From Phaeosaccion multiseriatum (taxonomy: Eukaryota > Protista > Ochrophyta, other classes): 64,000 nucleotides of DNA. The translations under genes and the position numbers were made by a program. Positions within the stretch are counted from its first letter, which is position 1. Each line of letters begins with the position of its first letter. The stretch lies in assembly GCA_965112735.1 (NCBI GenBank), contig OZ218951.1, positions 496,001-560,000 of the forward strand, in the 5' to 3' direction. The notes under the pieces are model-generated. The model made no database searches. It worked only from the letters and a program-made list of their open reading frames with translations, and was not told the origin of the DNA. Of the stretch, positions 1 to 56,554 are shown one piece after another.

Positions 1-1260
1 GACGTGAGCTTCATCGAGGCGCACGGCACGGGCACGCCCCTCGGGGACCGCACGGAGTGGGCTTCCATCGCCGGAACCTATGGAGACCACGACCTGGCAA
101 CAGCCCGCCGTCTCGTCGTTGGAGCGATCAAGACCAACCTTGGTCACGCGGAGGCTGCGGCAGGCATTGCAGGGCTCATCAAGACGGTGCTGGTGCTCAG
201 GCATGTCCAAGCGCCTCCCAACCTCAACCTGTCCACGCTGAACCCTGCACTGAAGACGGAGGGCAACAGCGCTCTGCTACCCATCCCCGGACGCATGACC
301 CCCATCTCTACCCGAATCGGAGGTGCGTTGGGGCCCTTATTCAAAAACGTTTCCTGTGACCACTCACTCACTCACTCACTTCACTCACTCACTCACTCAC
401 TCACTCACTCACTCACTCACTCACTCACTCACTCACTCACTCACTCACTCACTCACTCACTCACCCAATCACTCACTCACTCACTCACTCACTCACCCAA
501 TCACTCACTCACTCATTCACTCACTCACTCACTCACTCACCCAATCACTCACTCACTCACTCACTCAATCACTCACTCACCCAATCACTCACTCACTCAT
601 TCACTCACTCACTCACTCACTCACTCTCACTCACCCAATCACTCACTCACTCACTCACTCACTCACTCACCCAATCACTCACTCACCCACTCCCACTCAC
701 TCACTCGCGTCTTCTTGAGACAAGTTAAGGATTACTTTAGAGGGTATGAGCTATCGTATGATGGTAAATGGCTCAACCCGTTCTCACCATGCACTTCTGC
801 TCGCTGTGGTTACTTCTGCTCCTTTCGCAGCTGTCAACTCCTTTGGGTTTGGCGGTGTCAATGCCCACGTCATCCTGGAGGGGACGGCCACCTCACAAGC
901 GGAGAAGACCAACGTCAGAGCCTCCCCGTTCACGAGCAGAAAGGCCTTCAAGCTGCTGCCCCCCCCACCGACATCGGCGGCCGGAAAAAGCTCCTTGGCA
1001 GTAGAGCTCCGCGGTGTCAGTCCAGCCGAACGCCAAGAGAGGCTTCGATCCGTCATCTCCGACATCGCCCTCTCCAGCACGGCAGGCTCTGTCGGCATCG
1101 ACATGGACAAGCCTCTCATGGAGGCTGGCATGGATTCGTTGGCGCTCATGGAGCTGAGGCAGCGTCTGCACCTGCTCACGGACATTCCCGTTAGCAGTGC
1201 CGCCCTCTTTGCCCACCCCACCGTGGCGGCCTTGGCGGAGTGGTTGGGCTCGGCGCTCAT
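1..1260 (+). other. PKS module 0 (partial): KS C-terminal half followed directly by ACP; no AT and no reductive domains
   Basis: EAHGTGT, KTNLGH and [11 protein letters not shown], then a short linker and an ACP with the [10 protein letters not shown] phosphopantetheine motif (Ser codon 1136-1138). Confidence 0.85.
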
Positions 1261-4200
1261 GGAGGGAAGTGCGAGCAGCCTGCGCCTGTCCAGGAGGATG
1301 CCATCGTCTCAAGGGGGGGGCGACGCTTCTGCCCCGCTGGCAATAGTGAGCATGGCGTGCCGCTTCCCCGGAGGCGCAGACAGTCCCGACGCTTTCTGGT
1401 CCATGCTGCTGGAGGGAAAGGACTGCATCACCGCCATGCCCTCGGGAAGACTCACTGGTGCGGCGAAGGAGTGGCACGGAGGCTTCATCGACGGCGTGGA
1501 GATGTTCGACAACGCCACCTTTGGCATCTCCGTGGCTGAGGCCGAGGCCATGGACCCCACTCAGCGCATCATGCTGGAGGTCGGCTACGAGGCGCTGCAC
1601 GAGGCAGGCTTCTCTATGGCCACGCTGCGCAACAGCAACACCGGAGTGTTCGTCGGCTCCATGCAGCACGGCGACTGGGCCGCGCTGAACAAGGATGGTG
1701 ACACCAAAGCTCACTCAATGATGGGCGAGTCAGCGGGCTGCCCTGCAAATCGCCTGTCCTATGCACTGGGCTTGCGAGGCCCAAGCATATCTGTTGATAC
1801 GCTTTGCTCTTCCTCGCTCGTTGCCTTGGACACGGCTTGTCGCTACCTTCGCTTCGGCACGTGCGATGCTGCGGTTGTGGGAGGAGTGAACCTGCTACTC
1901 GGCTCCCGTTCCTTCGAGCAGCTCGACAAGGGAGGTTTCTTGTCCAAGGACTGGTACGTACGGGAGAATGGGGGGGCTGGCCTTGGGGAGCATCGAGCTC
2001 CTGTAACTCGAGTAGAGTCATAGAGTGCTTGCTGACAGGTAATCACAAGCATCATTCCTCTCATCGGCTTGTCCTTCCTTCTCTGCCCCCATCTGCCTCG
2101 TGCTGCTACCGAAGGCGCTGCAAGGCCTTCGACGCAGCGGCTAACGGCTACGTCCGAGGAGAGGGCTGCGGCGCCTTGGTGGTGAAGCGGCTTGACGACG
2201 CGGAGCGCAGTGGAGACAACATCCTGGCCGTCGTGCGGGGAAGCTCCGTGAACCACAATGGGCGCTCTATGCGGCTCACAGCACCCAGTCCAGACGCACA
2301 GCGGACACTGATTGAGGCAGCCTTGGAGGAGGCGGATGTAGCGGGCAGCGAGGTTCACTTCGTGGAGGCGCACGGCACCGGCACGGCTCTTGGCGACCCC
2401 ATCGAGATGAGCGCTCTCAAAGCCGCCTACGGAGAAGGGCGGGAGAGCTCTTTCCCACTCATGGTGGGAGCGGTCAAGACCAACATTGGTCACTTGGAGG
2501 GCGCCGCAGGCATCGCGGGACTCATCAAGACCATCCTCGCGCTTCAGCACCGAGCTGTTCCACGCAATCTGCACCTCGGCAAGCTCAATCCTGAGATTGG
2601 GGTTGATGGATTTGCGGTGGCATTCCCTTCGTCGAGACTATCTCCATTGGGTAGCGAGGAGGGACACCCCAATGACAGCGAGGAGGTGCTGTACGCAGGA
2701 GTAAGCTCGTTCGGAGCAGGAGGCACCAACGCCCATGTGGTGCTGAGCAGCGCTGCGCCGAGAGTGGAGGGAGGGGTCTCGAAAGCGCCGAAGGGGAGTG
2801 AGGATACGGAGGTCGCCTCACCTGCGCACGTCTTTGTCTTCACGGGGCAAGGCTCGCAGTACCCCGGAATGGGCAAGGAGCTCTACGACGAGGTTAGTTG
2901 ATTCGTTGCGCGCACCATCTCCGTCTCAGTCCTCTCTTGGCATCCATCACCTCGGCCCACCTGCCCTCGTTCTCATATTCGTCTCTCTCTCTCTTGTTCC
3001 CTCCGCTCTCTGTGTCTCTCTTTTGGTGCCTCAACAGCGTGCGGTCTTTCGCGAGTGCGTGCAGCGGTGCAGGAGGCTGCTCATGGAGCGGGCCTGGCTG
3101 GACAAGTCTGTGGTGGAGCTCATGTACCCGGCGGTCGCTGAGGACGGGGAGGAGGAGGAGGAGGGGGAGACTGCACAGGCGCTGCTGAAGGAGACACGCT
3201 ACTGCCAGCCGTGCCTGTTTGTGCTGGAATACGCCCTTTGCGCGCTGTGGAAGTCGGAGGGAGTGGAGCCGTCGATGGTGATGGGCCACAGCCTGGGCGA
3301 GGTAGTGGCGGCGTGCGTGGCCGGCGTCATGTCGCTGGAGGACGGGCTGATGCTGTCCGCCAAGAGAGGAGCCGCCATGCAGGCCTGCCCCGAGGGGAGT
3401 GGAGTGATGTTCGCAGTGAAAACGGGCAGGGAAGCAGCAATGGCAAGGATTGACGCTGCGGGGGTGGCAGGGGAGGTGGTGCTGGCGTCCTCCAACGGCC
3501 CTCAGGCCTGCGTGATCTCTGGTGCTCGCAGCGCTGTGGACAAGGTGGTGGAGAGACTCACAGCCGATGGGGTGGGCTGCAAGGCCCTGGAGGTGTCGCA
3601 CGCCTTCCACTCTCCTCTCATGGAGCCCGCTGTACGTGCGCTGGAGGAGGCACTGAGGCAGGTGTCATTCAGCGCCCCACGCATCCCCCTGGTGTCCAAC
3701 GTGACAGGCGAGGTGGTGAAGGCTGAGGAGGTGACGCAGGTAGCGTACTGGGTGCAACACATGCTATCGCCGGTGCTGTTCGTGGAGAGTATCACCACGC
3801 TGCTCCGGGAGAGGCCTGAAGGTGTACGAGTGGTAGAGATTGGGCCCAGCTCTGTGCTGATCAACATGGCGCGGCAATGCGAGGGAGAGAGGTCGGACGT
3901 GATGTGGCAGCCGTCCATGCGGCGGGAGGGGAGCGACACCGCCTCGTTCGACAGAGCAGTGGCGGCAGTACTGGGCAAGCCCACACCTCTGTTCCCCACC
4001 CGTCGTGCGCTCCCTTGGTTCGAGCAGCAGGCGCATGCGATGGTACCAAGCGGCGGCGTCGTCGAGAAGAAGGGAGGAACACTCCTCTCATGCCGCTTCA
4101 CCCCTCAGCTCAAGGGCTTGCTGCAGGATCACGCGGTGGGAGGAGTGGTGCTCATGCCGGGCATGGGGTACATCGAGATTGGCCTTGCCGCCTTGCTGAA

Positions 4201-7200
4201 GGGCAAGCCTTTCCCTAGCGAGACGCAAGTGGTCCTGAAGGGCCTGGTCTTCATGGCTCCACTGGAAATTGCAGGCGCTCGTGCCCCCGATGTGGACCGT
4301 ACGGTGGAGGGCTCCACCACTGTGGTCGCTTCTGAAGTCAGTGCCTTCGTCACTGCCCGCGGCAGCGTGCAGTTTATCGGAGGTCCCCACGGCAAGGCTG
4401 GAGAGACGGTGGCGAAGGCGACTTCCCTTCACTTGTGCACAAGGACGGAGGCAGAGACATTGGACGTGGCGCGGGTGAGAGCCGCGGTAGGGGACGAGGA
4501 CATCGCCGAGGGGCTCTACCTCAAGCTTGCCAGTGCTGGTTATGACTACGGTGCCAGCTTTGTCCGAACGCAGCACCTTTTCGCAGCCAGTGGACAGGCC
4601 TTGTCGGTTGCGGCGGCAATGGATGGCAGCCTATCGGCGGAGTGGGAGATCAACGGCTTCTACCTCCACCCTGCAGTGTTGGATAATGCCGCGCACACGA
4701 TGTTGGCGCTCTTGCCGGAGGAGCTGACGAGCAAGGCCTTTGCCGCCGTCTTCTTGCCCACCGGCTGCGAAGAGGTGCTTGTGCGAGGGGCCATCACGGG
4801 CGAGAAGGTGTGGGTTCATGCGGTGGTGAAGGAGGTGGACTCTCAAGCTCGTGCGATCGAGTGCGACATCGTGATAGCACACTTTGAGACGAAGCAAGTG
4901 CTCGTGCAGCTTAACCGCTTCCGGATGCAGCTGGCCCGAGGCTTCTCCCGCACCAACCCCGTCAGCCGAGCGCTGTATTCTCTAGAGTGGCTGCCCAACG
5001 ATTCCATCTCCCGCAGCAGAGGTGACGTGGAAGAGCGAGAGGAAGCTTGGCTGCTCCTCACCAGCGGCGCTCGTGGCAGCTTGGACAAGGCAGCGAAAGA
5101 GAGCTTGCCCATCTCTGTGACACTGACGGAGAGGGAGGTCAAGATCATCGACGACTCCACCCTCGCTTCAGAAGCGCCAGCAGGATGGGGCCGTGTGGTG
5201 TGCACCTTGTTCGGCGGCAAGCAGCAGAGCCCCAGCCAAGAGGCACAGACACTCCACTTGTTGCTACAGCAGCTCTTACGAAGGCCAGCTCCCTTGATGG
5301 TGCTGGTGCAGGACACGCTGAGTGGCGGCGAGGGGTGGAGGCATCACTGGGTGTACGGCATGATTCGAACCGCTCGTGTCGAGCACCCTTCGCTGGCCAT
5401 GACGGTGGTGGACGTGGGCAGCGAGGACCTGCCCAAGTGCTGGGCCATTGAATCACTGGGGCAGGACGTTTGGGTGCGAGACGGACGATATCTCACGCCT
5501 CAGCTGACTCGCTCCTCGGTAGTCAGTCTTCCCTTCTCCTTCGATCTCATGGCGAGGGGAAGCATCGAGGGAGGCTTGAAGCGCAGAGACGTACTCCCTT
5601 CCGAGAGAGACGCTGCCTTGCAGGACGGGGAGATTGAAATTTGTGTCAAGGCGGTGGGGCTCAACTTCAGAGACGTGCTGAATGTGCTCGACCTGTACCC
5701 TGGCGACCCTGGGCAGCCTGGCATCGAGCTATCGGGGGTGGTCACTCGAGCATCGCGAAACTCGCGCTTTCAAGTGGGAGACAAGGTCTACGGGTTTCCG
5801 GACAAGGGCTGCTTCTGCTCCCACGTAACGACACGTGACGTGTGTCTGGCCATCATGCCTTCCAACAGGACCTTTGATGACATGGCAGCGTTGCCTATCG
5901 CGTGGCTCACAGTGGTGCACGCCTTTGAGCAACTCGCTGGCTTGAAGCGTGGTGAGAAGGTGCTCATCCATGCCGCGTCAGATGGAGTGGGTCTGGTGGC
6001 CGTGCAGATTGCTCAGCGCATCGGAGCGGAGATCTACGCCACTGCTGGATCCGAGGAGAAGCACGCCTACTTGCGAGGCCTGGGCGTGAAGCACGTTGCG
6101 TCGTCGAGAGATGCGGAGGCCTTCAAGGCTACCATGGGAGCTGCAAAGGTGGATGTGGTGCTCAATTGCCTGTCCGACAACTTCATCCCTTACTCTCTGG
6201 AGCTGCTGACGAAGAACGGGCGCTTCATGGAGATCGGCAAGCGAGGCGTGTGGACCGGGGAGGCGATGAAGGCTGCCAGGCCCGACGTGCTGTACGAGCT
6301 GATTGCGCTGGACTCCATGATAGCAGACGACTTCAAGGCCGAGAAGCAGGGCTGGGGGTTCGCTAGGCTGGAGCAACTGACAGCGGACAGTGAGGCGGGC
6401 AGGGCCGAGGCGCTACCAGTGAAGACATTCGACTTGAGGGATGAGCTTGTGGAGGCAATGAACTTCCTCAGAACTGCGAAGCACATTGGGAAGGTTGTGC
6501 TCAGTAGCCCTGAGTGTGGCATTCCCGTCGTGCGAGATGGGACTTACGTTGTCAGCGGTGGGCTGGGGGCGCTGGGGCTGGCGACTGCGAAGCATTTGGC
6601 TGATAAAGGAGCTCGTCATCTTGTACTGCTCTCGCGAGGGGGAAAGGTCAAGGCGGACTCCCAGTCGCTGTGGGAGGAGCTTGTCACGGTGGCTGGCGGG
6701 GTGGGCACCAAGGCTGTATCGTGCGACGTGTCTAGCGCGCAGTCGCTTGAGAAGGCTCTAGGCACGGCGCTCAGTAGCATGCCGCCCGTACGAGGTGTCA
6801 TCCACGCTGCTGGCGTGCTCGACGATCGCTTGCTGGTGGACCAGACGCCCGAGAGTATCGAAGAGGTCTTCAAGCCGAAGGTGGAGGGCGCTTGGAATCT
6901 GCACGAGCTGTCGGTGCAGATGGCCTGGCCCTTGGACTTCTTTGTGTCCTACACATCCATGGCAGGTGTGCTAGGCAATGCAGGCCAGGCCAACTATGCT
7001 GCAGCCAACGCTGCTGTGGACGGGCTGATGCAGCATCGTCGGCGTCTCGGTTACTCCAGCTCTGTGGCCCTGCAGTGGGGGCCGTGGGGCGAAGCTGGCA
7101 TGGCCGCTCGATCCGAAGTTGCCATGGCCAGTCTGGAGATGGCCGGCGTTAGGCTCATCAGTAAGGCAGTAGGTATGGCGGCGCTTGATGCCGGCGTGTC

Positions 7201-10200
7201 GGCCCCATCTGCGGTATCGCGCGAGCTCTTGGTCCTGCCTGGCATGGACTGGCTTGCCTTTTCTCAGGCTGCTGGCAACCCGGGGATGCTTGATGCTCTC
7301 GTTAGAGAGGCTTCAATGGTTGGACCGCAGAACAAGGCTAGCAACAGTGTGACTACCGAGGTTAAGCGCGACCTACTGGAGCTTTCGAAGAAAGAGCGAA
7401 AACCCATGCTGCAGGCTTTAATCATGGAGATGGCAAAAGCATGCATTGGGGAAGCAGGCATCGAGCTCGACGCTTTGAGGCCTTTGATGGAGGCTGGGCT
7501 GGACTCCATGTCTACGGTGGAGCTTCGGAGTCGACTTCAAGCTCGTTTCGGCGTGCCTGTCCCCAACGACGTGCTCTTCAGTCACCCCTCAGTGGCAGCA
7601 CTGACTGTGTGGCTCGAGGGCTTGGTCTTGGGGGCTGAGGAGGGTGAATATGAGGAGAGGAATGCTGAACCGGCTGGAGGTAGCATGACTGCCCCCCTGG
7701 CTGTTGTGGGCATGGCGTGCCGCTTTCCGGGGGGCTCGAACAGTCCAGAGGCCTTTTGGTCAATGCTGCGCGCAGGTACTGACTGCATTCAGACTGCCCC
7801 TCTGAACCGGTGGGCGGGAAAAGAGGGGAGCGAGGATTGGCAAGGCAGCTTCATTGCTGAGGTGGAAATGTTTGACCCCGCCGTATTCGGCATCTCGTTT
7901 GCCGAAGCGGCTGCGATGGATCCGCACCAGCGAGTGATGCTGGAGGTTGGATACGAGGCATTGGTCAACGCGGGGTGCGACAAAGCAAGCTTGGCGGGCA
8001 GTCGGGCAGGCGTCTTCATCGGCATGATGAGCCTCGGCGACTGGGGCTACCAGGGCAAGGATGTAGGGGCTGGAGTATACCGCACTATGGGTCGCATCCA
8101 ATGTGGCGTTGCCAATCGGCTCTCGTACGTGCTGGGGCTGCAGGGCCCGTCCATGACCACTGACACGGCGTGCTCGTCATCGCTGGTGGCCTTGGAAAAC
8201 GCTTGCAGCAGCTTACGCATGGGCAAGTGCGATTCCGCTGTCGTCGGGGGCGTCAATTGCTTGCTCGGGCCAGTGGCCTTTGAGGACATTCAGGGCAGCG
8301 GCTTCCTGTCGCCGGACTGGTAAGTGCTTCCATTTTGTACCTCCGCACCAATGGTTCTGCTCCTCCGTCTCGTCCGACTTTACTTGCGCCGCCGACTAAA
8401 ACTCCCCTCACGCTACCCATGCCCTTCTCAGGCGCTGCAAGACGTTCGACGCGTCGGCAAACGGATACGTGCGTGGTGAAGGATGCGGTGCCGTTGTGCT
8501 GAAACGTCTAGATGACGCCCTCGCTGCCGGAGACACCGTCCTCGCTGTGATTGAGGGCTGTGCCGTGAACCACAACGGAACCAGTGCCCGCCTCACGGCC
8601 CCCAGCCCCGCCGCCCAGCAGAGACTCATCGAGGCGACGCTGCGTGAGGCCGGTCGAGAGGGCTCCGAGGTACGCATCGTGGAGGCACACGGCACGGGCA
8701 CATCTCTCGGCGACCCAATCGAGATGAGTGCTCTCAGGGCCACGTACGGAAAGAACCGTGACGACTCTTTCCCGCTGGTAGTGGGTGCGGTCAAGACCAA
8801 TATTGGCCATCTGGAGGGTGCGGCGGGCATTGCCGGGCTCATCAAGGCCGTCTTGATGCTGCAGCACCGCGCCGTGCCCGCCAACCTTCACCTCGAGAGC
8901 GTCAACCCGGAGCTGGCCATGGACGGCTTCCCCGTGCAGCTCCCGTCGGTGATGGTGCAGCTGGAGGACGAGGGAGACATGTTGGTGGGGGTGAGCTCAT
9001 TCGGGGCGGGAGGAACGAATGCACACGTGCTGCTGAGGAGCCATGGGGAGAAGAGTGACTCCGTACTGACGGCTGGTATGAAAAGCGATGGGGGCCCCTT
9101 CGTCAAGGAGGAGGCGCTCTTCCCGAATCGTGTGGCCTTCCCGTGGTACAAGAGCGATAATCACGCTTTATTTCCGAGTGGAGGGGTGCGAGATGAGAAG
9201 GGCGGGGTGCTGCTGTCCTGCCCATTCTCTCCAAGGCTCAAGGGCCTGCTGCAGGAGCACGCAGTGGGGGGGGTGGTGCTCATGCCGGGCATGGGCTACA
9301 TTGAGCTGGCCCTGGCCACGCTGCTGAGGGGCGAGGCCTTCCCCGCAGATGGCCAGGTGCGCATGAAGGGCCTCGTCTTCACGGCCCCGCTGGAGGTGGC
9401 AGGCGCCCGTGTGCCTGGCGTGGAGCGGATGGTGGATGGGTCCACGACGGTGGCATGCTCGGAGGTGAACGTGTTCCTCTCTGCCCACGGTAAGACGCGG
9501 ATCACGGGCGGCTCCCGCGGCAAGGCAGGTGAGGCTGTGGCCAGGGCGGCGTCAGTGGTGCTGGAGGCAAGAGAGGCTACTGCAATGATGGACGTGAGGA
9601 GCATCCAGGAGGCAGTGGGGCAGCGAGACGTGTCGGGTGAGCTGTACGCCACGTTCGCCAAGGCCGGCTTCAACTACGGTCCCCGCTTCAGGCGAACAGA
9701 GCGCTTGTACGCTGCCGAGGGACAGGCTCTGTCCGTGGCGACAGCGCAGGACCCCAGCCTGTGCTCTGAGTGGGAGGTGCGTGGATTCTACCTCCACCCC
9801 GCCGTGCTGGACAGTGCCGCACACACCATGCTTGCGCTTCTACCTTCTGATCTAACCAAGGGTGGTACGTTCTTGCCAGCTGGATGCAATGACGTGGTTG
9901 CGAAGGGCGCCATCAGAGGAGACAAGGTGTGGGTGCATACCGTGCTCACCGAGATCAGCGACAAGCGCGACAGCGTCAACTTTGACATTGTCATTGCCGA
10001 CTTTGACAGCCAGTACGTGCTCGTGACCATGAAGGGCGTCAAGCTGCAGAGGGCCAAGGGCTTTACGCTCCTGAACCCTCTTCGTCGAGCCTTATACTAT
10101 CTGGAGTGGCAGCCAGACAAGGCTCTGGCTCTGCCAACCACCACGGGGAAGGATGGTGTGGAGAAGGAGACGTGGCTGGCTTTGGTAGATAGAGTAAGTG

Positions 10201-34200: not shown

Positions 34201-37200
34201 GGCGTCGTCGAATGGACCGAGCGCGAGCGTGATCTCTGGAGCTCGCAGCGCTGTGGACAAGGTGGTGGAGAAGCTCACGGCAGATGGGGTGGGCTGCAAG
34301 GCCCTGGAGGTGTCGCACGCCTTCCACTCTCCTCTGATGGAGCCCGCTGTACTTGCGCTGGAGGAGGTTCTGAGGCAGGTGTCGTTCAGCGCCCCACGCA
34401 TTCCCCTGGTGTCCAACGTGACGGGTGAGGTGGTGAGAGCGGAGGAGGTGACGCAGGCGACGTATTGGGTGCAACACATGCTGTCGCCAGTGCTGTTCGC
34501 AGAAGGCATCCACACGGTGGTGGAGCACTGGATGGGAGACGGGAGGGGGGCTGACCTGAGCATCGTTGAGGTGGGCCCCAACCCTGTGCTGAGCAGTATG
34601 GGAGCCAAGTGCGAGCGTCGCGAGGGCCTGGCGTGGATCTCTTCTCTCACGCGCGGGAAGAGCTCTGAGGATTCGTTTCGAGTAGCTCTGAGTACAGTGC
34701 AGCAGCAAGAGAGTAAGGGCAAGGAGCACATCCTGTTCCCAACGCGCAAAGCCTTTCCTTGGTACACAGCGCGAGCCACAGCAGCACCTCAGCCGCGGAG
34801 TGAAGCTGAGCAGGGCCCGCTCTATGTTGTTGAGTGGGAGGCGGTGGGGGTGCCCACGGCTTCGCAGCAGGCTTCGCTGACCGGCAGCCTTCCGTGGCTC
34901 GTCGTGATTCCCCAGGCAGCTGAAGAGCAGCACGCTTCGAACAACCACAGAGCCTTGGAAGCTGTCCGAAGCGCGGCGACAGCAAGTGGTGTGGAGGTGC
35001 ACGTGGTGGAGGCGGTCGATTCAGACGCGCAGCCCCGTGGGGCCCATCTCTTCTACTTGACGTCAGCAACGGGCTCTGCTACCGATGGGGCAATCCACTT
35101 TGTGCAAACTGTACAGAGCTTCGACGGGGACGCGGCAGTGATACCGATCACGGTGGTGACAACGGGTGTGTACAGCGGGGCTGGTTGGCAGGACAGCTGG
35201 GCAGTGGGACTGGTGAGAAGCGTCCGCCTGGAGCGGGGCGACCTCGATATGAACCACATTGACCTTGAGTATGCCATGTATCCACATTCTGAGGATGCTC
35301 GACCTAGAGTAGAGAACATGGAAGCCCAAGCTATCTCCCAGGCTGTGACGCTGGCTGCAGGAGCCCGCGACGGCGGCCGAGGCGTGGACCTGCTGGTTCG
35401 AGAGTGTGAGATCCTCGCTCCGAGGCTGGTGCCCAGCACACTCCATCTGACATCGGCAGGAGTCGATCGCTTCACGTGCAGGGAGGATGGGACCTACCTG
35501 ATCAGCGGTGGTCTGGGGGGGCTGGGGCTGGTGACGGCGAATCACTTGGTCTCCCAGGGCGCTCGACACTTGCTCCTCCTTTCTCGTAGCGGCCGGGCGG
35601 CGGAGGAAGTTTCAGAGCTGTGGCAGGCCCTGCAGAGTATGGAGAGTGTCACCGCTGTGGCCGTGGCCTGCGATGTGTCCGACATGCATCAGCTTCGAGA
35701 TGCTGTGGCAACGGCCTTGGTGGGACTGCCTCATGTTCGGGGTGTGATCCACGCAGCGGGGGTGAATGGCGCAAAGAGAATGTTGTCGGGCGAGACGGAA
35801 GAGAACGTGCGAAATGTCTTTGCCGCCAAGGTCCAGGGAGGTTGGAACCTCCACGCGCTGTGCCTTGAGTGGGTGGCGAGCGGCAGGGAGGAGGTCGACT
35901 TCTTCGTCTCGTACTCATCGACCTCCGCTTTGCTTGGCTTGTCCAATCAAAGCGCCTATGCCGGGGCAAACGCTGCTTTGGACGGGCTGATGCGGTATCG
36001 CCGGCAGCAGCTTGGCCTTCCTGCTTCCAACGTTCAGTGGGGCCCATGGGGCGACGTGGGTATGGCGGTGCGGCTTGAGATGGCGTCGAAAGCTGCGGAG
36101 ATGGCCGGAGTGGGCCTGATCTCATCGGCGCTAGGTATGAAGGCTCTGGATGCCGTCCTTGCAAGTCAAACGCAAGCCAACGCGCAGGAGGTGGCCGTCA
36201 TGCCGGGCATGAGGTGGGGCAGATTTCGAGCGAGCTTGGACCCTGTGCACAGCGCTTTCCTCGGGCAGTTGACGGACCGCGGAGAAAGTGGTGAGGCGGC
36301 AAAGGGCTACAGCGTCAATGCCGAGGTGCGGGAGGAGCTCCTGCACTTGCCGGAGTCAGCACGGCGGGAGAGGATCGAGCAAGTCCTGACGGGTATGGCA
36401 GTCGAGTGTGTTGGAGATGACTTCACCTTGGCAGCAGAGATGCCCTTGGTGGAAGCCGGACTCGATTCGATGGCGGCCGTGGAGTTTGGCAAGCGAGTCG
36501 AGGCCTGGTGTGGTGTCACCATGTCGAGCGGCGCCTTCTTTACGTATCCATCGGTGTCTGCAATGGCTGCATGGGTCGAAGAGGAAGTGCTGGGAGCGGA
36601 CTCGGGGCCGCTGAGTGAGCTTGATGATCAAGCAACAGGTCTTTCGCACTACTCCTTGGATGCTGACGCCCCCGCGGCTTACCAGCAGGAGCACATGTAC
36701 CTTTCAGATATAGCACTGCGGACGACTGCACCTGGCGGGCAGAGCGCGTACAATCTCCCAGTGGTGCTGCCGCTGCCAGTCTCGCTGATCTCCGGACGAA
36801 CATCCGCTGAAATTGTGGACATGATAGCACAAGTGTTAGGCAGCATAGTGGAGCGACACGACGTTCTCCGGACGGTGCTTGAGTGGACAAAGCAGGGCTC
36901 TCTGAGGCAGGTTCAGCTTGGAATTACTGCAGCCGCGGTGGTGTCAGCTTGTCTCTCTTCTGCCGTGGCCAGCAGTGTTGGGGCGGCTCGGAGCCTGATC
37001 GAGGCCGATATCGCTCGTCCATTCGATTTGGAGCGGAGCCAGCCTCTATGGCGTACGTTGGTCGTACACCTCCCGCAGCAGAGCGGAGTGGAGGAGCAGT
37101 ATGCCGCGGTATCTACTTTCCATCATTGCATCTTTGATGGTGTATCCTACTTGCTCTTCCAGAGCGAGTTCAGGGCCACATGCGCAGCTGCCATGGCGGG

Positions 37201-40200
37201 GAGAGGCATTGCACAGGACCTACCGGCTCTGCCCTTCAGCTTCGCGGACTACTCCAGGTGGCAACGAGCTCGCCTGGACGGCGAAGGTCGTATTGAGGAG
37301 CTGCTCGAATATTGGCAGGGTCAACTGGCTGGTACCAGTCCACTGCAACTGCCTCTCCATCAGCGACATGCCCAAAAGGGCCTCAGTGGAGAAATGGTGC
37401 ATGAAGATATCAGTGTGGGAGGAAGTGGGAGGGTGGACTTGGTGCTACCCAATGCAGTGGTGGTCAAGTTGAGTAAACTGTGCGCGGATAGCTCCGCCAC
37501 GCTGTTTGTGGGGCTCATGGGCGCGTTCCAAGTGCTGCTGGCTCGTGTGTGCGGAGCGGAGGATGTGGTGGTGGGCACTGCGCACTTCGGAAGAGACATG
37601 GCGCAAGGCTTGGAGGGCGTGCTGGGATGCTTCGTCAACACCCTCGCGTTCCGTCTGGGCCTGGGAGGAAGGCCCAGCTTTCGGGAGGTGCTGCTTCGCG
37701 TACAGGTCGCGTATCTGGGTGCCATGAAGCATGCCGAGGCGCCATTCCACAAGGTGGTGGAGCGGGCCCAGCTGGGCAGAGATGCTCGTGGCAAGGCACT
37801 GCAGGCCTTCTTTGTACTGCAGGAGGCGGGTTTGGATACTTTGAAGAATCAGGAGGCGGGTGTGGATAGTTGGAAGAATAATACGACTGACATCGAGCTA
37901 AGCCTTGTGCGCAGCACGGACAGTGCGTCGGACATGCACGGCAGCCTGTGCTACAATACGGCGGTGCTCGACCAGGCCACAGTGGAGACCCTGGGGCGGA
38001 GCTTCCTGGCGCTGCTGGAGAGCGCAGTGGGCAGGCCGGGCCAGAACGTGTGGAAGCTGAGTCTCTTGGCACACGAGGACCGTGTGAAGGTGGTGGAGAC
38101 GTTGAGCGGCGCTGCACTGGTGGCGGGGGATGCCAATGGAGACGAGGAGGGAGGTGCAGAGGAAGCATCGCCACCACCGCCCCTCCTGCACGCGGTTTTC
38201 GAAGAGATGGCCTCTCGCAGTCCGGAGCAGGAAGCCCTGCACGAGTATGAGACGGGTCGAGTGATGAGCTACGGGGAGCTGAATGGGCATGCGAATGCGG
38301 TGGCATGCATGCTGCAGGGGAGGGGCGTGGGGCCGGAGTGCCTGGTGGGGGTGCTGATTGCTGGGGACTGCGTGGAGGCGGTTGTGGCAGTGCTGGGCGT
38401 GCTCAAGGCCGGGGCGGCGTACGTGCCCCTGGATCCCGAGCATCCCGACGATAGGCTGTCGATGATCGCACAAGACACCGGGCTGAGCGTCGTTCTGACG
38501 ACGGCAAAGGCATCAGGCGAGTCTGAGGTGCTGGCAACCGCCGATGCCAGCTTAGCGCGGCGTGTCGGAGACGTGAGCTGTGTGGACGTGGTGGCTGTGA
38601 TGCAAGTGGAGAGTACAGCGGAGCCTGTGTGCCACGCCGTGGGCGAGAACATGGCGTACGTGATTCACACGTCCGGTAGTACGGGCCGGCCAAAGGGCGT
38701 GATGATTGAGCACAGAAGCACGGCCAGCTTCATGGCGACTCTCTACGAAGAGGAACTGACCATAACGGCATCTTCGCGCGTGCTTCTGTGCAGCGCTTTG
38801 ACATTTGATGTGTCTGTGGCGTCGCTGTTTGGGGCGTTGTCGTGTGGGGCGACGCTGTGCTTGGCGGAGAAGGGCTCCATGCTGAACGACCTGCCGGAGG
38901 TGATACGGTCTTTGAGGGTAACAGACATGTACTGCACCCCGTCACTGCTGTCGCTACTTCGACCGCAAGACATCACCAATGGTGCTAAGGAGGCCACCTT
39001 ACGGTCCATCGCATTGATTGGGGAGCCGATCAAGGAAGGCCAAGTGGACATGTGGAGGCGCAGTGTTCGCCTTGTCAATAGCTACGGCCCAACAGAGGCG
39101 ACGGTTTCCGCTACCGCACATGAGTACAGTCCGGGTGCCATGTCGAGTGGGTTCGTCATCGGCAAGCCTCGAGCCGGCGTGCAGGTGTATGTGGTGGACA
39201 AGCGTCTGCAGCTGGTGCCTCAGGGCGTCGAGGGCGAGCTGTGCATTGGGGGGAGGCAGCTGGCGCGTGGGTACTTGAATCGCCCAGAGCTCACGTCGAA
39301 GGCCTTCATGCCCGCGCCCTTCCTGGCGGACCAGCGCAGGGTGTATCGTACGGTAAGTCGACAAGGTTGCCCATGGGTATGCGGCTTTGTGTGTGTGCGT
39401 GTATGGTGTGTACATTTGGCTTGCTTTTGGCCTGTCATGCGGTGAAAAGAAGAGAGCGCAGGGGGGGGGGGGTGGAGGTAGGTTTATCTGCTGCCTATGC
39501 TGTAGTAGTGTTCTGATCTGACACATCTCAAACTTAATACGTTCTGACAGGGTGACTTGGTGCGGCAGCTGGCAGACGGATCGCTGGTGTTTAGGGGTCG
39601 CCGAGACTCTCAAGTGAAGGTGCGCGGCCATCGCATTGAGCTGGGCGAGGTGGAGGCTGCGCTGCTCCATCAAGAAGGTGTGAGGAGCGCTGTGGCAGCC
39701 GTGGACAGAGAGCGCGAGACGGTTGTGGCGGCTCTGACACCTTCTAGTGCCGAAGCTGAGATGGTGCTGCAAGGAGTGAGCAAGCTGCTACCGGCATACA
39801 TGGTGCCGAGCACGGCTGTGGCCATGGATGCTCTACCAATGACGAGCAGCGGGAAGCGAGACGTGAAAGAGCTTCTTAGAGCCATTCGAGCGGCACATGA
39901 CCATGGCCCTGGCAGGCAGCGGAGCCTAGGCGTCAGCGATGACGCACCTATGGACGACACCACCCGTCAAGTGCTCGGCATTATGCGAGAGGCCATTGGG
40001 CGACCGGATCTGCGAGCCAGCGGCGACTTGTTCGCCGAGGGAGGCACTTCGCTTGACGCTGCAAGTGTCACAGCACGCATCCGCGCAGAGGTGCCAGGCT
40101 TCGAGGTGAGTGGGATAGAGGGCTGTCTTTCTGGTGTGGCCGGTAGTTCCAAATGGTTTGCTAATATAGTTGTGGACCGTCGGATATCCTTACTCGTTGC

Positions 40201-43200
40201 TGTACTCAGGCGCTCCGAGTGGCAGAGATGTTCCAGACACCCACCGCGAGGGGTGTATCTCGCTTATGTGCGAGCAGGGAGGACACGCTTCCTGGTATGA
40301 TGGTGGTATCGCGAGTTGGCGACCATCGTGAGGCTCCAGCGTCGTACCAACAGGAGCACATGCTGCTGTCGGACCTGGCGCTGCGAGCGGGCGACCCAGA
40401 CGGGAGGGCGCGATACAACGTGCCCATGCTTCTACCCGTGCCCAGCTCCGAATCGGAGAGAGAGCCCAGCGAGGTTGTGGACGGCTTGTCCCGTGCCCTG
40501 TGCGCCATGGTGGAGCGTCACGATGTTCTGCGATTGGCGCTAGGCTGGTCACCGGAGGGGACGCTGCAGCAGGTGCGGCTGCAGACCACAGCAGCGGAGG
40601 TTGTGGCGTCAGTGCTCCTGTCCGCCGAGGCGAACAGCATCGAAGAGGCCGAGAGCGTGCTATTGGCAGAGGCGGGGCGCCTGTTTGACTTGGAGGAAAG
40701 GCCACTCTGGCGCAGCACCATCGTCACCGTTGCACCACCCCAGGATGGTGAGAAGGAGCACCCGCTGGGGCGGCAAGCGGTGCTGTGTGTCTTCCACCAC
40801 TCCATCATGGATGGGTGGTCATCCAAGCTGTTCTCGCGCGAGCTGTTGGTCCTGTGGGGGGCTGTCGTGTCTGGCCGAGAGGCGACGAAGGCGCCAGCGG
40901 CTCTGCCGTTTGGGTATGCGGACTACTTCCGGTGGCAGCGGTTGCGACTGGACGGGGACAACGGCCTGGCTCTGGAGCAGCTGTTGGAGTACTGGCAGGG
41001 GCAGCTAACGGGGGCGTCTTCACTGACCCTGCCCCTGGACCGACCGCACGGTGCTTTCGGCCCGCATCTGACGGAGACTGTAGGTCAAGATGGGATTGTG
41101 GGGGGGCGCGGCGGGAGTGTCGCTGTTGTTCTGCCGGCTTCGCTGATAGTGAAGCTGAGCAAGCTATGCTCGAGCAGCTCCGTCACGCTGTTTGTGGGGC
41201 TCATGGGCGCGTTCCAAGTGCTGCTGGCTCGTGTGTGCGGAGCGGAGGATGTGGTGGTGGGCACTGCGCACTTCGGAAGGGACGTGGCGCAAGGCTTGGA
41301 GGGCGTGCTGGGATGCTTCGTCAACACCCTCGCGTTCCGTCTGGGCCTAGGAGGAAGCCCCAGCTTTCGGGAGGTGCTGCTTCGCGTACAGGTCGCGTAT
41401 CTGGGTGCCATGAAGCATGCCGAGGCACCGTTCCACAAGGTGGTGGAGCGGGCCCAACTGGGCACAAAGAGTGGTGGCAAGGCGCTACAAGCCTTCTTTG
41501 TACTGCAGGAGGGAAATGCCAGCGCCGTGGAGGAGGAGGCCCAGCTGTCAGCTGGAGCACTCCACGAGATCATGACGGAGGAGGCTGGAGAGCAGCAGGC
41601 CATTGACGTTAGCAAGACTGACATCGAGCTAAGCCTTGTGCGCAGCACGGACAGTGCATCGGACATGCACGGCAGCCTGTGCTACAATACGGCGGTGCTC
41701 GACCAGGCCACAGTGGAGACCCTGGCGCGGAGCTTCCTGGCGCTGCTGGAGAGTGCAGTGGGCAGGCCGGGCGAGAGCGTGTGGAAGCTGAGTCTCTTGG
41801 CACACGAGGACCGTGTGAAGGTGGTGGAGACGTTGAGCGGCGCTGCACTGGTGGCGGGGGATGCCAATGGAGACGAGGAGGGAGGTGCAGAGGAAGCATC
41901 GCCACCGCCGCCCCTCCTGCACGCGGCTTTCGAAGAGATGGCCTCTTGTAGTCCGGAGCAGGAAGCCCTGCACGAGTATGAGACAGGTCGAGTGATGAGC
42001 TACGGGGAGCTGAATGGGCATGCGAATACGGTGGCATGCATGCTGCAGGGGAGGGGCGTGGGGCCGGAGTGCCTGGTGGGGGTGCTGATTGCTGGGGACT
42101 GCGTGGAGGCGGTTGTGGCAGTGCTGGGCGTGCTCAAGGCCGGGGCGGCGTACGTGCCCCTGGATCCCGAGCATCCCCACGATAGGCTGTCGATGATCGC
42201 ACAAGATGCCGGGCTGAGCGTCGTTCTGACGACGGCAAAGGCAGTTGGCGAGTCTGAGGTGCTGGCAACCGCCGATGCCAGCTTAGCGCGGCGTGTCGGA
42301 GACGTGAGCTGCGTGGACGTGGTGGCTGTGATGCAAGTGGAGAGTACAGCGGAGCCTGTGTGCCACACCGTGGGCGAGAACATGGCGTACGTGATCTACA
42401 CGTCCGGTAGCACAGGCCGGCCAAAGGGCGTGATGATTGAGCACAGAAGCACGGCCTGCTTCATGGCGACTCTCTACGAATTCGAACTGACAGTGACAGC
42501 ATCTTCGCGCGTGCTTCTGAGCAGCGCTTTGACTTTCGATGTGTCTATGGCGTTGCTGTTCGGGACGTTGTCGTGTGGGGCGAAGCTGTGTTTGGCGGAG
42601 AAGGGCTCCCTGCTGAACGACCTGCCGGAGCTGATACGGTATTTCGGGGTGACGGAAGCTGAATTCACCCCCTCACTGTTGTCACTGCTGAAACCGGGAG
42701 ACATTATGGAGGAGGGCACCTTACGGTCGATCGCTTTGGGTGGGGAGACAGTGAAGCAGGATCAAGTGGACATGTGGAGGCACCATGTGCGCCTCGTTAA
42801 TAGCTACGGTCCAACAGAGGCGACGGTTTCCGCGACCGCACATGAGTACTCCTCTGGGGCCCTGTCGTGCGCATCTGTCATCGGCAAGCCTCTGACTGGC
42901 GTGCAAGTGTATGTGGTGGACAAGCGTCTGCAGCTGGTGCCTCAGGGCGTGGAGGGCGAGCTGTGCATTGGGGGGAGACAGCTGGCGCGGGGTTACTTGA
43001 ATCGCCCAGAGCTCACGTCGAAGGCCTTCATCCCCGCGCCCTTCCTGGCGGACCAGCGCAGAGTGTATCGTACGGTAAGTCGAAAAGGTTGCCCATGGGT
43101 GTGCGGCTTTGTGTGTGTGCGTGTATTGTGTGTACATTTGGCTTGCTTTTGGCATGTCATGCAGTGACAAGCAGAGCGCAGGGGGGGGTGGAGGTAGGTT

Positions 43201-46200
43201 TATCTGCTGCCTATGGTGTAGTGTTCTGACGCGTCTCAAACTGAACACGTTCGGACAGGGTGACTTGGTGCGGCAGCTGGGAGACGGATCGCTGGTGTTT
43301 AGCGGTCGCCGAGACTCTCAAGTGAAGGTGCGCGGCTATCGCATTGAGTTGGGCGAGGTGGAGGCTGCGCTGCTCCATCAAGAGGGGGTGGTGAGCGCTG
43401 TGGCAGCGGTGGACAGAGAGCGCGAGATGATTGTGGCAGCTCTGACACCTTCTAGTGCCGAAGTTGAGATGGTGCTGCAAGGAGTGAGCAGGCTGCTACC
43501 GTCATACATGGTGCCGAGCACGGCTGTGGCCGTGGATGCTCTACCGATGACGAGCAGTGGGAAGAGAGACGTGAAAGAGGTGCTGAGGATGATCAAGGCG
43601 GAAGCGAAGGGAAACAAAACCGCTGTAAAGGCGTCCGACGGCGACGAGGCGTTAGGCGACACTGCCCGCCAAGTGCTGGGCATCCTGAGGCAGGCCACGG
43701 AGCAGCCTCACTTGCAGGCCAATGACGACTTGTTCGCAGAGGGAGGCACATCGTTGAGTGCAGCTCAGGCGGTTTCGCGTATTCGGGCAGAGGTTCCCGG
43801 CTTCGAGGTGAGTGACTTTGAGCACAAAGCTTTCGTCGTGTTGTGTCTCGCCCTTGTTGCTGACCCTGTTGTGTCTGTGTGACTCCTGCAGGCTCTGACA
43901 GTAATGCAGATCTTCCAGAACCGAACCGCTGTGGCACTTTCAGTGCTTGGTGCCGCGGAGGAGGGCGGAGGTCGAGGAGACAGCGGGCAAGAGTCGTCGG
44001 CAGCAAGCGAAGCCCGACTGAAGGACGAGGAGCGCGATTTTGAGTCAGTCGGTGAAGAAGGGGAAGCGATGAAGGCGCACAGGAGGCTCAGCACTGGCAA
44101 GCAAGTGGTGCTGCAGGTTCTGACTTGGCTGCTCGTCGTTGCTGTGCTCAGCTGCGGGTTTTCTCCCAGCTTCGTTGGCGTGTACTTGCTACGTAGAGCA
44201 GGGCGCGGCAATACGACGATTCTTTCTTGGCTACCACTCCTCGTCGTCGTGTCAGTAGGCTGGGTCCTTGCCCTGATTGTAGTGGTGAAGTGGACTATGC
44301 TTGGCCGCATGCGACCGGGGCGATGGTCCGTGAGGAGCTGGTACTACTGGCGGTGGTATGCTGTGCAGAATGTGCTGAAACTTGCCGCACTGCTGATTTC
44401 TGTTCTCCGTGGTACCTTCGCCTTGCGGGTGTGGAACCGCCTGCTGGGGGCACGAATCAGTGGAAGCGCGCGCTTAGAGAGCTGGCTGCTGCACGAGCAT
44501 GACTTGATCGAGATTGGAGAAGGGGCCGTGATCGAGTACGGAGCCGTCATTCGCCCGTCTGTCATTACTCGAAATGGCATGCTCCATGTCCATCGCGTGA
44601 GGATCGGGAAGGGAGCAAAGGTGGGCATACTGTCCAACGTGTGTCCGTCTCCATGGGAGGGGGGGCAGACGCAGGAGCGGGGGGAGGGCCTGAAGAAGGA
44701 GCCGAAGGAGCCGAAGGACTTGGTCATCGGCGAGGGGACGGAGCTCGGTCCGTACGCGTCGCTCGGCCATTCGTCACTCTCTGGCCCGCTGGCAGAGGTC
44801 GAGCGCGAGGAGGGGCTGCGGCGGACAGGAAAAGAGCTTTTTGCCTTGGCCCTGCTTTCAGTGACCAACTTGGGGTCGTACGTGCTGCCCCTCTGGATAC
44901 TCGTGCTTGCCGGCGGGGGTGATGACGACGGCGCGGGGGAGAGTGTCCCCATCTTCGCTCGTGCATTGGCGTTCCCCGTGCTTCTGTTGATCGGAAGCAT
45001 GCTGTACATGGTGGCAGTGCTATCGATCCAGCGTGTATTTTTGCTGCTCGGCCCCAGCGCCACCACACGGCTGTCACTCGGAGTTCTTCAGGAGAGTCCT
45101 CTCTTCACGGTTGGCTCCCTTCTTGTGGCAAAATGTGGGCTCAACCGTGTTGTTGCTTCCGCCATGGGCGCCAGGCTGGAGCGGGGGTGCGCACTTTCTA
45201 CCCTTCCTATCACTACGATATGGGAGAAGCTCAGGATAGGGGAAAACTCCCAGCTCGCGGGCTCTGTGCACCTTTTCGCTGATGGGGGTGGTCGTGGAGA
45301 CGAGGATACGCAAAGCATCACAATCGGCCGCTTCAGTATTGTTGCGAACGAAGCTCTTCTCATGGGCGGAGCTTGCATTGGGGACGGAAGCACGGTCGCA
45401 GATCGCACCGTTGTGAGAAGAGACGATGACGTACCGTGCAACTCTTCTGTAGTGGGCGCCCCTCGGCCGTTTGTATTGCCGAACCCAGTGAGTGCTGCTG
45501 GTGAGAAGGATGGCGTCGATGCAGCAGGCAGTCTTCCTGTTCCGTCGAGGATGCACAATGCGCTCCGTGGGCTTGCGACTGTGGTACTGCTCCTCGGCGT
45601 ATGGTGTCCGGGGGTGCTGATCAGCGCGTCGGTATCTGACCTGCTGTTGCGCAATGGCCATGTGCATGGGGCTGCCGCCTTCTGTCCCTTCGTCCTTCCA
45701 GAAGTGGTGGCGAAGGATACTCTGAGCGAGAGCCATACTGGAGTGTTCTTCCTTGTGTTGGGGAGCTTCGTCTTTCAAGTTCTCATGGCCTTGGCGGGCG
45801 CTTGCTCAGCCATTCATTTCCATCGAGTTCTGGGCACATCCTTGCATGCCAAAGAGGGGCAGCCTCCCATAGCGCTCGATTCGCCTTCGCTGGATATATA
45901 CCACTTGGGCAGCATGGCCCCTGCCTTCATTGAGGCTCTCTGCATCAAGTACTTCGCGGGCGGGCCGGTGTACGCGGCGTGGCTGCGGCTGCTGGGGGCA
46001 AGTGTTGGCAAGGACACATCTTTATGGCTCAGGCCTTATGATGTGCATCTTCTCGTCATTGGAGACGAAGCGGTGGTGTTGCAAGACTCCACAATCTTCG
46101 CGCACACCATCGAAGGCACGGGAGGGTTCGTCTTCAAGACTGTGCAAGTCGGGGAGAACGCGTGGCTCGGAGCAAGGGCTCACTTGCAGCCTGGATGCCG

Positions 46201-46537
46201 CGTTGAAGCAGGAGCTAACGTTGGTGACCTGAGCATGGCCATGAGAGGTGAAAGTGTCACCAATTCAAAGCGTGGAGACGTGGTGTGGGTGGGCATACCG
46301 CTGAGAAAGTACTTCTTGTCCTCCCGAGCGCTCACTGCGCCGCGTCACGGAACGGAGCTGGACAGCGGCAGAGCCCCGGCAGAAGAGCGAACCCTTCGCA
46401 ACAAGGGCAGAGGGGGGTCGAGGAGACATGTGGTTCGAGAGGGAAACAGCCCTCGCCGAGGAGGAGCGTCTTTCCGGTGGAAGAGTGTGCATCAGCCTGA
46501 GGAGACGAAGAATACGGATAGATTCGATGTAGTTTGA
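1..46537 (+). CDS. Giant hybrid modular type I PKS-NRPS (5'-partial, >=14,764 aa; 8 KS, 4 AT, 4 DH, 4 ER, 7 KR, 8 ACP, 2 C-A-PCP, Pls-like terminal domain)
   Basis: The ORFs join in frame through GT-AG introns. Exons: 1-322, 831-1953, 2115-2892, 3038-8319, 8432-13477, 13639-17907, 18049-23166, 23317-27576, 27718-32835, 32989-39352, 39551-40105, 40210-43074, 43259-43807, 43892-46537 (total 44,295 nt, divisible by 3; TGA at 46535-46537). The junctions restore split conserved motifs ([10 protein letters not shown][W/G]RCK[T/A]FD, ELYDE|RAVFREC, YRT|GDL, PGFE|AL). Confidence 0.9.
361..706 (+). repeat. (TCAC)n microsatellite in PKS intron 323-830
   Basis: Tandem TCAC with CCAA interruptions. Confidence 0.97.
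1331..7630 (+). other. PKS module 1: KS-AT(malonyl)-DH-ER-KR-ACP
   Basis: KS DTLCSSS/HGTGT/KTNIGH; AT FTGQGSQ, GHSLG, HAFHS; [13 protein letters not shown] and HPAVLD; ER LNFRD and HAASDGVG; [17 protein letters not shown]; ACP GLDSMS. Confidence 0.9.
5495..12320 (+). repeat. Internal duplication: ER-KR block about 5495-7160 repeated at about 10653-12320 (offset 5158)
   Basis: Near-identical DNA; the ORF track shows matching shadow ORFs at a constant offset of 5158 (e.g. 5500/10658, 6616/11774). Confidence 0.95.
7690..12780 (+). other. PKS module 2: KS-DH-ER-KR-ACP (AT-less)
   Basis: KS DTACSSS/HGTGT/KTNIGH; only about 40 aa separate the KS end (NAHVLL) from the DH region, with no GQGSQ or GHSxG; [10 protein letters not shown]; KR LDD/YAAAN; ACP GLDSMS. 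Confidence 0.9.
12846..17215 (+). other. PKS module 3: KS-AT(malonyl)-KR-ACP
   Basis: KS DTACSSS; AT FTGQGSQ, GHSLGQ, HAFHS; no DH or ER motifs; [17 protein letters not shown]; ACP GLDSMAS. Confidence 0.9.
17278..22470 (+). other. PKS module 4: KS-DH-ER-KR-ACP (AT-less)
   Basis: KS QTACSSS/HGTGT/KANIGH; no AT motifs; [13 protein letters not shown] and HPAVLD; ER LNFRD and HAASGGVG; KR LDD/YAAAN; ACP GLDSLS. Confidence 0.9.
22545..26885 (+). other. PKS module 5: KS-AT(malonyl)-KR-ACP
   Basis: KS DTACSSS; AT GHSLG/HAFHS; KR LDD/YAAAN; ACP GLDSMAS; paralogous to module 3. Confidence 0.9.
26947..32140 (+). other. PKS module 6: KS-DH-ER-KR-ACP (AT-less)
   Basis: Near-identical copy of module 4 at an offset of 9669 nt, with the same motif set. 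Confidence 0.9.
32214..36595 (+). other. PKS module 7: KS-AT(malonyl)-KR(non-LDD)-ACP
   Basis: KS DTACSSS; AT GHSLG/HAFHS; [20 protein letters not shown] (no LDD), QSAYAGAN; ACP GLDSMAA. Confidence 0.9.
36665..40270 (+). other. NRPS module 1: C-A-PCP
   Basis: C domain HHCIFDG (codon start 37121); A-domain cores [49 protein letters not shown]|[28 protein letters not shown]; PCP GGTSL. Confidence 0.92.
37490..43570 (+). repeat. Duplicated NRPS module (offset about 3.7 kb), including the intron at YRT|GD
   Basis: Shadow ORFs 37898/41629 and 38269/42000 lie at offset 3731, and introns 39353-39550 and 43075-43258 are clearly homologous. Confidence 0.93.
40330..43950 (+). other. NRPS module 2: C-A-PCP
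   Basis: C domain HHSIMDG (codon start 40795); full set of A-domain core motifs; PCP GGTSL; paralogous to NRPS module 1. Confidence 0.92.
44080..46320 (+). other. Membrane-bound NRPS terminal domain of the epsilon-poly-L-lysine synthetase (Pls)/TIGR02353 type: three repeats of TM hairpin plus hexapeptide-repeat segment
   Basis: Hydrophobic segments alternate with the motifs [101 protein letters not shown]. Recognised by eye, not by HMM. Confidence 0.8.
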
Positions 46538-49700: not shown

Positions 49701-49974
49701 CTACGGCATCCCGGATGCTCCTAAAGCGGCCATGCCTGACTCTGCTCTCCCCACCTCGCAAGAGCACAGCTGGCGAGGAAGCAAAGCGCGTACCCCGATG
49801 CCGCTGCTGAGCTCCTGCTGACCCGTCCCCCAGTGTTACTGCTGCACCCCATTGGCGGAGGCTAGCGTTTGCCTGGGCGGCATCAGCCGCTGCTGCAGCT
49901 GCATCTGCCGCTCCACAAAGCGCCAAGACAGTCACAGCCACAGTGGCGGCTACCACTGCTCCTGAGGCCTTCAT
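46757..49974 (-). CDS. CDS: Phosphatidate cytidylyltransferase (CDP-diacylglycerol synthase) with N-terminal signal/targeting extension
   Basis: Exons (minus strand) 49974-49447, 49243-49079, 48899-48793, 48510-48403, 48168-48057, 47444-47306, 47046-46757. Motifs [29 protein letters not shown] and the family signature [34 protein letters not shown]. Confidence 0.9.
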
Positions 49975-52707: not shown

Positions 52708-53374
52708 TTACAGACGCGCACAGAGCCTGATGAGGTGTTTGAGCTTGGCTATCCAGTCCTTGTGCAGCGACCAGTAGTTGCTGGACAGGTCCTGGTTCAC
52801 CGCCCCGGCGGTTTGCTGTTGTCCAGCCGGGTGCAAGTAGAGCAAAAAAAAACAGGCAGCAGCAGCGCACAAGGGAATGACGAAGTGCCTCTGTTAGACA
52901 GCGCTCGACTCAGAGGGCACACATGGCGGAGGCAGTAGCAGCAACGAGGATGAGGAGGATGTACGGAGAGGGACCGATCCGTAACCGCTCCCCCCCCGCT
53001 TTCGCCCTCCAGCAGGGCACAAGAGGAGCGCTGCACGCGTAGATAGGCGGCGCACACCCCTTACGTAACTATGCCCCAAGTCAAGTCACCACGTACCATG
53101 TCTCTGGCCTGCAGCGCGTGCACAAAGGTGGCCACCCTCTCCAGCACTTCGGACTCGAGCTCCCCCTTGCCCATCTTGTCGTAGAGCACGGCCACCGCCA
53201 CGTTCACCTGCCCCAGCATCTTCTTCTCAGGGGCGTTGAGCACCGAGCCCGTCAGCGCGGCGAGCATCTGATTCAGCGCAGCAACAATGGCGCCGCACTC
53301 GGCAGACGCCTGTGCAGCCGCGGGTGCGGTGACTGCGGGGTCCGTCGGGGCGGGCGCTGGGGATGGGGCTGCTG

Positions 53375-53408
<34 letters not shown>

Positions 53409-55663: not shown

Positions 55664-55727
<64 letters not shown>

Positions 55728-56514: not shown

Positions 56515-56554
<40 letters not shown>

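Follow-up and report, generated by a model that had tools for sequence, protein, structure and literature searches.

A giant intron-split PKS-NRPS gene of the ochrophyte Phaeosaccion multiseriatum ends in a Pls-type membrane domain

We analysed 64,000 nucleotides of Phaeosaccion multiseriatum (GCA_965112735.1, contig OZ218951.1, positions 496,001 to 560,000; hereafter the window) and find a single intron-split nuclear gene for a one-chain PKS-NRPS that exceeds 14,700 residues and carries, where a thioesterase would stand, a terminal domain of the Pls/PosA type. Giant single-gene PKS-NRPSs are a known kind of enzyme; it is the Pls-type release domain on such an enzyme of which we found no description, and this most unusual part had been left out of the first-pass annotation. 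We consider it probable, with some reserve, that this single-chain enzyme is anchored by its membrane end and releases a lipopeptide by acyl transfer to an amine or hydroxyl acceptor.

Fourteen long stop-free stretches tile positions 1 to 46,537 of the forward strand. The 13 introns placed between them independently, from the sequence, all have GT..AG ends; they measure 84–508 nt and total 2,242 nt, so that the visible coding sequence is 46,537 − 2,242 = 44,295 nt, i.e. 14,764 codons and a stop (46535–46537), for a protein of about 1.566 MDa. The first-pass annotation had arrived at the same length of frame and protein, and had described open reading frames that break inside conserved domains at GT-AG sites; the introns, once relocated, do break KS, AT and A domains. 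Each exon is free of stops in the phase inherited from the preceding introns, and none appears among the split codons. These junctions are not arbitrary, because seven introns share one homologous phase-2 site across the seven complete KS domains, the pairs 10/12 and 11/13 occupy matching sites in the two NRPS modules, Pfam profiles broken off at a junction are taken up again at an adjoining position (ketoacyl-synt about 222 to 223; AT 21 to 23), seven of the nine GTAAGT hexamers in the 46.5 kb are intron donors, and the introns, GC-poor (0.48–0.56 vs 0.61), have 3' ends rich in pyrimidines. The remaining GTAAGT and GTGAGT sites of the region stand in ordinary coding context, and no hidden in-frame introns were found there. 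Position 1 falls within a KS domain; the frame is therefore open upstream, as had been proposed, and the start of the gene lies outside the window.

Two details of the introns may be added. In intron 1, 87 copies of a CACT microsatellite (361–706) create a spurious open frame through the intron. The codon split by the shared KS intron is predicted to encode Trp instead of the usual KS residue Gly in 6 of 7 KS domains (D-W-R-C vs D-G-R-C), the Trp codons being at the ends of exons 2, 4, 6, 7, 8 and 9; Gly is kept in KS4.

Table 1. Features of the megasynthase locus (positions in the window)
Feature	Positions	Strand	Description
Megasynthase gene	1–46537	+	14 exons, 13 GT-AG introns; 5' end beyond window; 14,764 aa visible
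Module 1 (cut)	1–1246	+	C-terminal KS half with both His, then ACP; no AT, no KR
Module 2	1334–7606	+	KS-AT-DH-ER-KR-ACP; ER nucleotide-binding motif with Asp for Gly, possibly inactive; introns 2, 3
Module 3	7694–12767	+	KS-DH-ER-KR-ACP, no AT; intron 4
Module 4	12849–17194	+	KS-AT-KR(B-type)-ACP; intron 5
Module 5	17282–22447	+	KS-DH-ER-KR-ACP, no AT; intron 6
Module 6	22547–26863	+	KS-AT-KR(B-type)-ACP; intron 7
Module 7	26951–32116	+	KS-DH-ER-KR-ACP, no AT; intron 8; recent duplicate of module 5
Module 8	32216–36577	+	KS-AT-KR-ACP; KR with Tyr, no LDD motif; intron 9
NRPS module 9	36737–40093	+	C-A1-T; pocket code D-V-A-Y-A-I-S-V-S-K; intron 10
NRPS module 10	40210–43807	+	C-A2-T; pocket code D-V-A-E-A-G-S-V-S-K; intron 12
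Last exon	43892–46537	+	Pls/PosA-type terminal domain: three helical membrane hairpins, each followed by a left-handed beta-helix
Near-identical block	17253–20408	+	3,156 bp, intron included; 2 differences from 26922–30077
Intron 1	323–830	+	in module 1; contains CACT microsatellite
Intron 2	1954–2114	+	in module 2
Intron 3	2893–3037	+	in module 2
Intron 4	8320–8431	+	in module 3
Intron 5	13478–13638	+	in module 4
Intron 6	17908–18048	+	in module 5
Intron 7	23167–23316	+	in module 6
Intron 8	27577–27717	+	in module 7
Intron 9	32836–32988	+	in module 8
Intron 10	39353–39550	+	in NRPS module 9
Intron 11	40106–40209	+	GT..AG
Intron 12	43075–43258	+	in NRPS module 10
Intron 13	43808–43891	+	GT..AG, just before last exon

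A first-pass suggestion was to follow all 13 junctions in RNA. All or part of the 3' stretch occurs in six public runs, not one of them labelled RNA; X1, X2 and X5 were compared over 38950–44800 by means of short contigs, not reads. Contigs of runs X1 and X2 span retained introns and are thus DNA. Run X5, from another sample, study and strain, behaves as RNA: one joint omits the 104 nt with GT..AG ends of intron 11; in one contig exon 12, at its end, is continued by a start of the exon 11/13 type, so that intron 10 or 12—the two are paralogous—has been removed; loose contig ends at 43,808 and 43,890 mark the join of exons 13 and 14 without intron 13; and the bins of introns 10 and 12 have depths of only 0 and 9. 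Splicing at the four 3'-most intron positions (10 and 12 not being told apart) is thus seen for this gene or a close copy of it in another strain. X1, X2 and X5 differ from the window at more than 100 places, with extra variant contigs, and the spliced contigs of X5 may derive from a paralogue or another allele.

The samples also vary in the A2 pocket region (42644–42916), where contigs depart from the window at 42644 for an A1-like sequence. X5 has zero depth over 42674–42869, its contigs there turning A1-like, and is devoid of the A2 form; in X2, the contigs bearing the A2 pocket and the 3' end differ little from the window, and the A2 form stands at roughly half the last exon's depth, contig depth being no copy number. 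This variation suggests an allelic or paralogous swap of amino-acid specificity.

Three other accounts of the fragmented reading frames are ruled out: separate genes for each frame, by breaks that cut through KS, AT and A domains; a frameshifted pseudogene or sequencing errors, by the fact that every break is a GT..AG insert of 84–508 nt at homologous sites, and also by the splicing in X5; and a bacterial contaminant, by the introns and by two intron-rich neighbours on the reverse strand. The first of these neighbours (46757–50100) has a last exon matching the cytidylyltransferase family PF01148 (CDP-diacylglycerol synthase-like, E 1e-22), and its stop lies tail to tail with that of the megasynthase, about 220 bp away. 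The second (52700–64000), with microsatellites in its introns, resembles the COPII coat gene Sec31, on the basis of a weak PF12931 match on exon 55144–55512, a proline-rich exon and a Sec31-like C-terminus.

The visible assembly line comprises eight PKS modules, with an AT in every second one only (2, 4, 6 and 8), then two NRPS modules and the membrane domain. The collinear modules carry catalytic motifs whose meaning is established knowledge, and these are intact with one doubtful case: Cys-His-His in all seven complete KSs and both His in the cut one, the active Ser (GHSLG) and the malonyl-type HAFH motif (HAFHS) in 4/4 ATs, His and Asp in 4/4 DHs, Tyr in all KRs (six with the B-type LDD motif, lacking in KR8), the carrier Ser in the carrier domains, and HHxxxDG in both C domains. 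The doubtful case is the ER of module 2 (5969–5991), with Asp at the first Gly of the nucleotide-binding motif, where Gly is found in the ER of module 3, to which it is 98% identical; a single base may thus switch a saturated position to a double bond.

The distribution of ATs departs from the canonical cis-AT scheme. A canonical cis-AT PKS has an AT per module and a linker of about 100 residues between KS and AT, whereas four modules here have no AT, and the distance from the KS end to the AT is 28–34 residues, against 99–111 in five canonical cis-AT reference proteins. Moreover, the motif which follows the AT elsewhere comes directly after the KS in the modules deprived of AT. From this spacing and this motif, the ATs behave as inserts in an AT-less scaffold. 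The four malonyl ATs would also load the ACPs of the neighbouring AT-less modules. Such a mixed layout works in another eukaryotic modular PKS, the fungal LasC/LasD, where three modules only have an AT and no trans-AT seems involved (PMC13749307); that system differs by its two proteins, its TE macrocyclisation and the lack of NRPS modules and of a membrane end.

The first-pass annotation recognised no product, but part of one is predictable, in particular hydroxyl positions and two amino acids. The starter would be loaded upstream of the window, and malonate units added to the chain by seven of the visible PKS modules at least, and probably by all eight, in which fully reducing AT-less modules alternate with KR-only AT-bearing ones, leaving methylene-separated hydroxyls at C3, C7 and C11. 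Assuming collinearity and counting backwards from ACP8, one predicts OH at C3, CH2 at C5, OH at C7, CH2 at C9, OH at C11 and CH2 at C13; C15 would be CH2 or, should ER2 be inactive, part of a C14=C15 double bond, and C17 perhaps a ketone, provided that module 1 elongates. The two NRPS modules would then append one amino acid followed by a probably basic one, giving a malonate-derived chain amide-linked to two amino acids. In an alignment anchored on LgrA, the A2 pocket shares 6 of 10 residues, including Glu at position 278, with the ornithine signature cited in PMC3992020, and its substrate is probably a basic amino acid; no substrate can be assigned to A1 from its pocket code. Nothing points to a toxin.

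The terminal domain combines six membrane helices with three left-handed beta-helices. Against TIGR02353 (Pls/PosA), the last exon gives a match in three stretches (E 1e-38) whose score, 132.9 bits, is below the curated cut-off of 423.1. An AlphaFold model from a 93-row alignment (pTM 0.89) displays three helical hairpins and, after each of them, a beta-helix, as in the fold modelled for PosA (PMC10522769), and structure matches in the Atlas reach a TM-score of 0.79–0.83 with clusters of the Pls/PosA type. The nearest solved folds are the trimeric beta-helix acyltransferases LpxA and serine and maltose acetyltransferases; a sequence search of the PDB with this domain gave weak hexapeptide matches only. 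The domain retains only 50 of 104 family-conserved columns; erosion is strongest in the middle repeat, and in the third a 99%-conserved Asp is replaced by His. For Pls-type ends there is neither a solved structure nor established catalytic residues (PMC10522769). We found this end described only on bacterial polylysine-type enzymes, and in the literature no description of a PKS or PKS-NRPS bearing it; unloading in this manner is not known from giant algal enzymes.

Relatives of the end domain are all distant, mostly at about 30% sequence identity, and the best matches of the NRPS part reach 30–35%. The DH, ER and KR domains are closer (47–55%) to an unnamed protein of Chrysoparadoxa australica, CAM9397790.1, which fits the ochrophyte host proposed at first. 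This protein likewise ends AT-DH-ER-KR-ACP-C-A-T followed by a Pls-type end, with the same post-AT motif; it differs by a single NRPS module, another intron site and an end domain only 27% identical. Its annotation (L001 1–2076) begins in the middle of the ER, although the open frame continues through DH and the AT end as far as the contig reaches; the locus is another giant gene cut by assembly and annotation. Searches with single exons, within their length limits, found no identical, close or characterised enzyme; together with the breaks inside domains and the splicing at the 3' end, this leaves an uncharacterised PKS-NRPS of at least 1.5 MDa, as first proposed, as the best reading.

The same end occurs in other contexts: directly after the ACP of two PKS modules, the second AT-less, with no amino-acid module, in a protein of Stygiella incarcerata (P0233); likewise directly after the ACP in a PKS with no amino-acid module in a JGI protein (P0240); after C-A-T in Phalansterium solitarium; and on a metagenomic FAAL-PKS. 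In a quick tree the Phaeosaccion domain falls among ten long-branched rows with multi-module fusions, apart from the named stand-alone Pls/PosA, a grouping to which long-branch attraction possibly contributes. Besides, Eucalyptus proteins of about 2,300 residues (P0281, P0311–P0318) match this end domain and combine amine oxidase, FAAL-like, ACP, hexapeptide and catalase-like domains; they form a plant branch of the family.

Does the end polymerise, as in Pls/PosA? Those enzymes also have an A-T immediately before six membrane helices in three pairs and three left-handed beta-helices (TIGR02353, PMC10522769); they are, however, stand-alone enzymes of about 1,300 residues polymerising a diamino acid, whereas the present domain terminates a ten-module line. 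Given the shared fold, the adjacent A-T and the ornithine-like A2 pocket with its Glu at 278, A2-T2 might be reloaded while a basic amino-acid chain grows on a lipid primer, or lipopeptide units might be joined head to tail through a side-chain amine. We regard this as unlikely: both A1 and A2 have Ala where all homopolymer synthetases have a conserved Glu at 239 (Glu221 in PosA; PMC10522769), the end scores far below the family cut-off and groups, on long branches, with the fusions, a canonical C2 already attaches the last residue, and relatives bear the end with no preceding A domain. The gene product is thus not a Pls/PosA member. Since lines devoid of amino-acid modules have this end right after a bare ACP, and since A2 lacks the pocket Glu of homopolymer synthetases, we read it as a release transferase: most likely it transfers the product to an acceptor at the membrane. 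The triple beta-helix domain would anchor the enzyme while the acyl chain moves from the last T to a free amine or hydroxyl, yielding a membrane or cell-covering amphiphile.

The modules have been duplicated. Segment 13,635–26,865 matches 23,313–36,579 at 92%, introns included, and the two NRPS modules match each other at 88%. The duplicated modules have a dN/dS of 0.26–0.37 and indels that are all multiples of three; the copies are therefore under selection. Outside the near-identical block of Table 1 the duplicates stand at dS 0.08–0.25; the block itself could reflect a recent conversion or an assembly effect, and the number of modules may vary by strain or assembly. Through unequal crossover within it, the chain would gain or lose a hydroxylated unit of four carbons, and its length may thus vary between strains. 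Between A1 and A2, dN is 0.17 in the pocket stretch vs 0.02–0.06 elsewhere.

Fast duplication and conversion of modules, divergence focused on the A1/A2 pocket and variation between strains are typical of specialised-metabolite genes, and the predicted chain has internal nucleophiles. The product might accordingly be a soluble bioactive lipopeptide (allelochemical, surfactant or defence compound), the end cyclising it through its own hydroxyl or amine, or hydrolysing it, and coupling release to export. This seems to us improbable, for beta-helix trimers are group transferases between two substrates, and the characterised algal non-toxin precedent, PKS1 of Chlamydomonas reinhardtii, serves wall formation (cited in PMC11808170 and in the PKZILLA paper). 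PKS1, a giant algal type I PKS gene of about 83 kb, offers a precedent for a structural product; it belongs to a green alga, and is likened here by gene form and role. Finally, the block with its two differences, the variant contigs of the public runs and the ER2 change could be taken for a partial assembly mosaic with a wrong number of bimodules, or for a decaying copy silent while paralogues are expressed, which is very improbable given the purifying selection on the duplicates outside the block, 44 kb devoid of stop or frameshift, and X2 contigs with the A2 pocket and 3' end that nearly match the window.

The comparison first made with the PKZILLAs of Prymnesium parvum stands for the form of the gene: they too are multi-module type I PKSs, each encoded by one intron-split gene with GT-AG introns, fragmented by automatic annotation. 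It fails for size, acyltransferases and release. PKZILLA-1 and -2 (4.7 and 3.2 MDa; 56 trans-AT modules, TE; 10.1101/2024.01.29.577497) are 2–3 times larger than the visible part of our protein, at least 1.57 MDa, and trans-AT throughout, whereas cis ATs are present here in every second module. They have KS0 bimodules and make the polyene precursor of a polyether toxin, while we find no KS0 among seven complete KSs and DH modules provided with an ER; they release by a TE with no NRPS tail, at the opposite of C-A-T-C-A-T and a Pls-type end. The window gene has none of the PKZILLA-specific features.

More tentatively, and with the odds rather against it, the gene might represent an undescribed class of membrane-anchored eukaryotic megasynthases, whose Pls-type end would perform a new release chemistry, joining a polyol-peptide to a membrane or wall acceptor or polymerising it, within an expanded and recombining family that would provide an ochrophyte alga with a tunable material for its cell surface.

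Gene callers routinely fragment the giant PKS genes of algae, hardly any of which has been linked to a product. Here the predicted 1,5-spaced hydroxyls with two amino acids are a chemistry that can be searched by mass spectrometry. The release domain is of a kind with no characterised example on an assembly line, and the last 1,900 residues (C2-A2-T2-end) make a tractable construct to learn how Pls-type domains form bonds. Judging by the relatives in another ochrophyte, a jakobid and an amoebozoan, the answer would apply widely.
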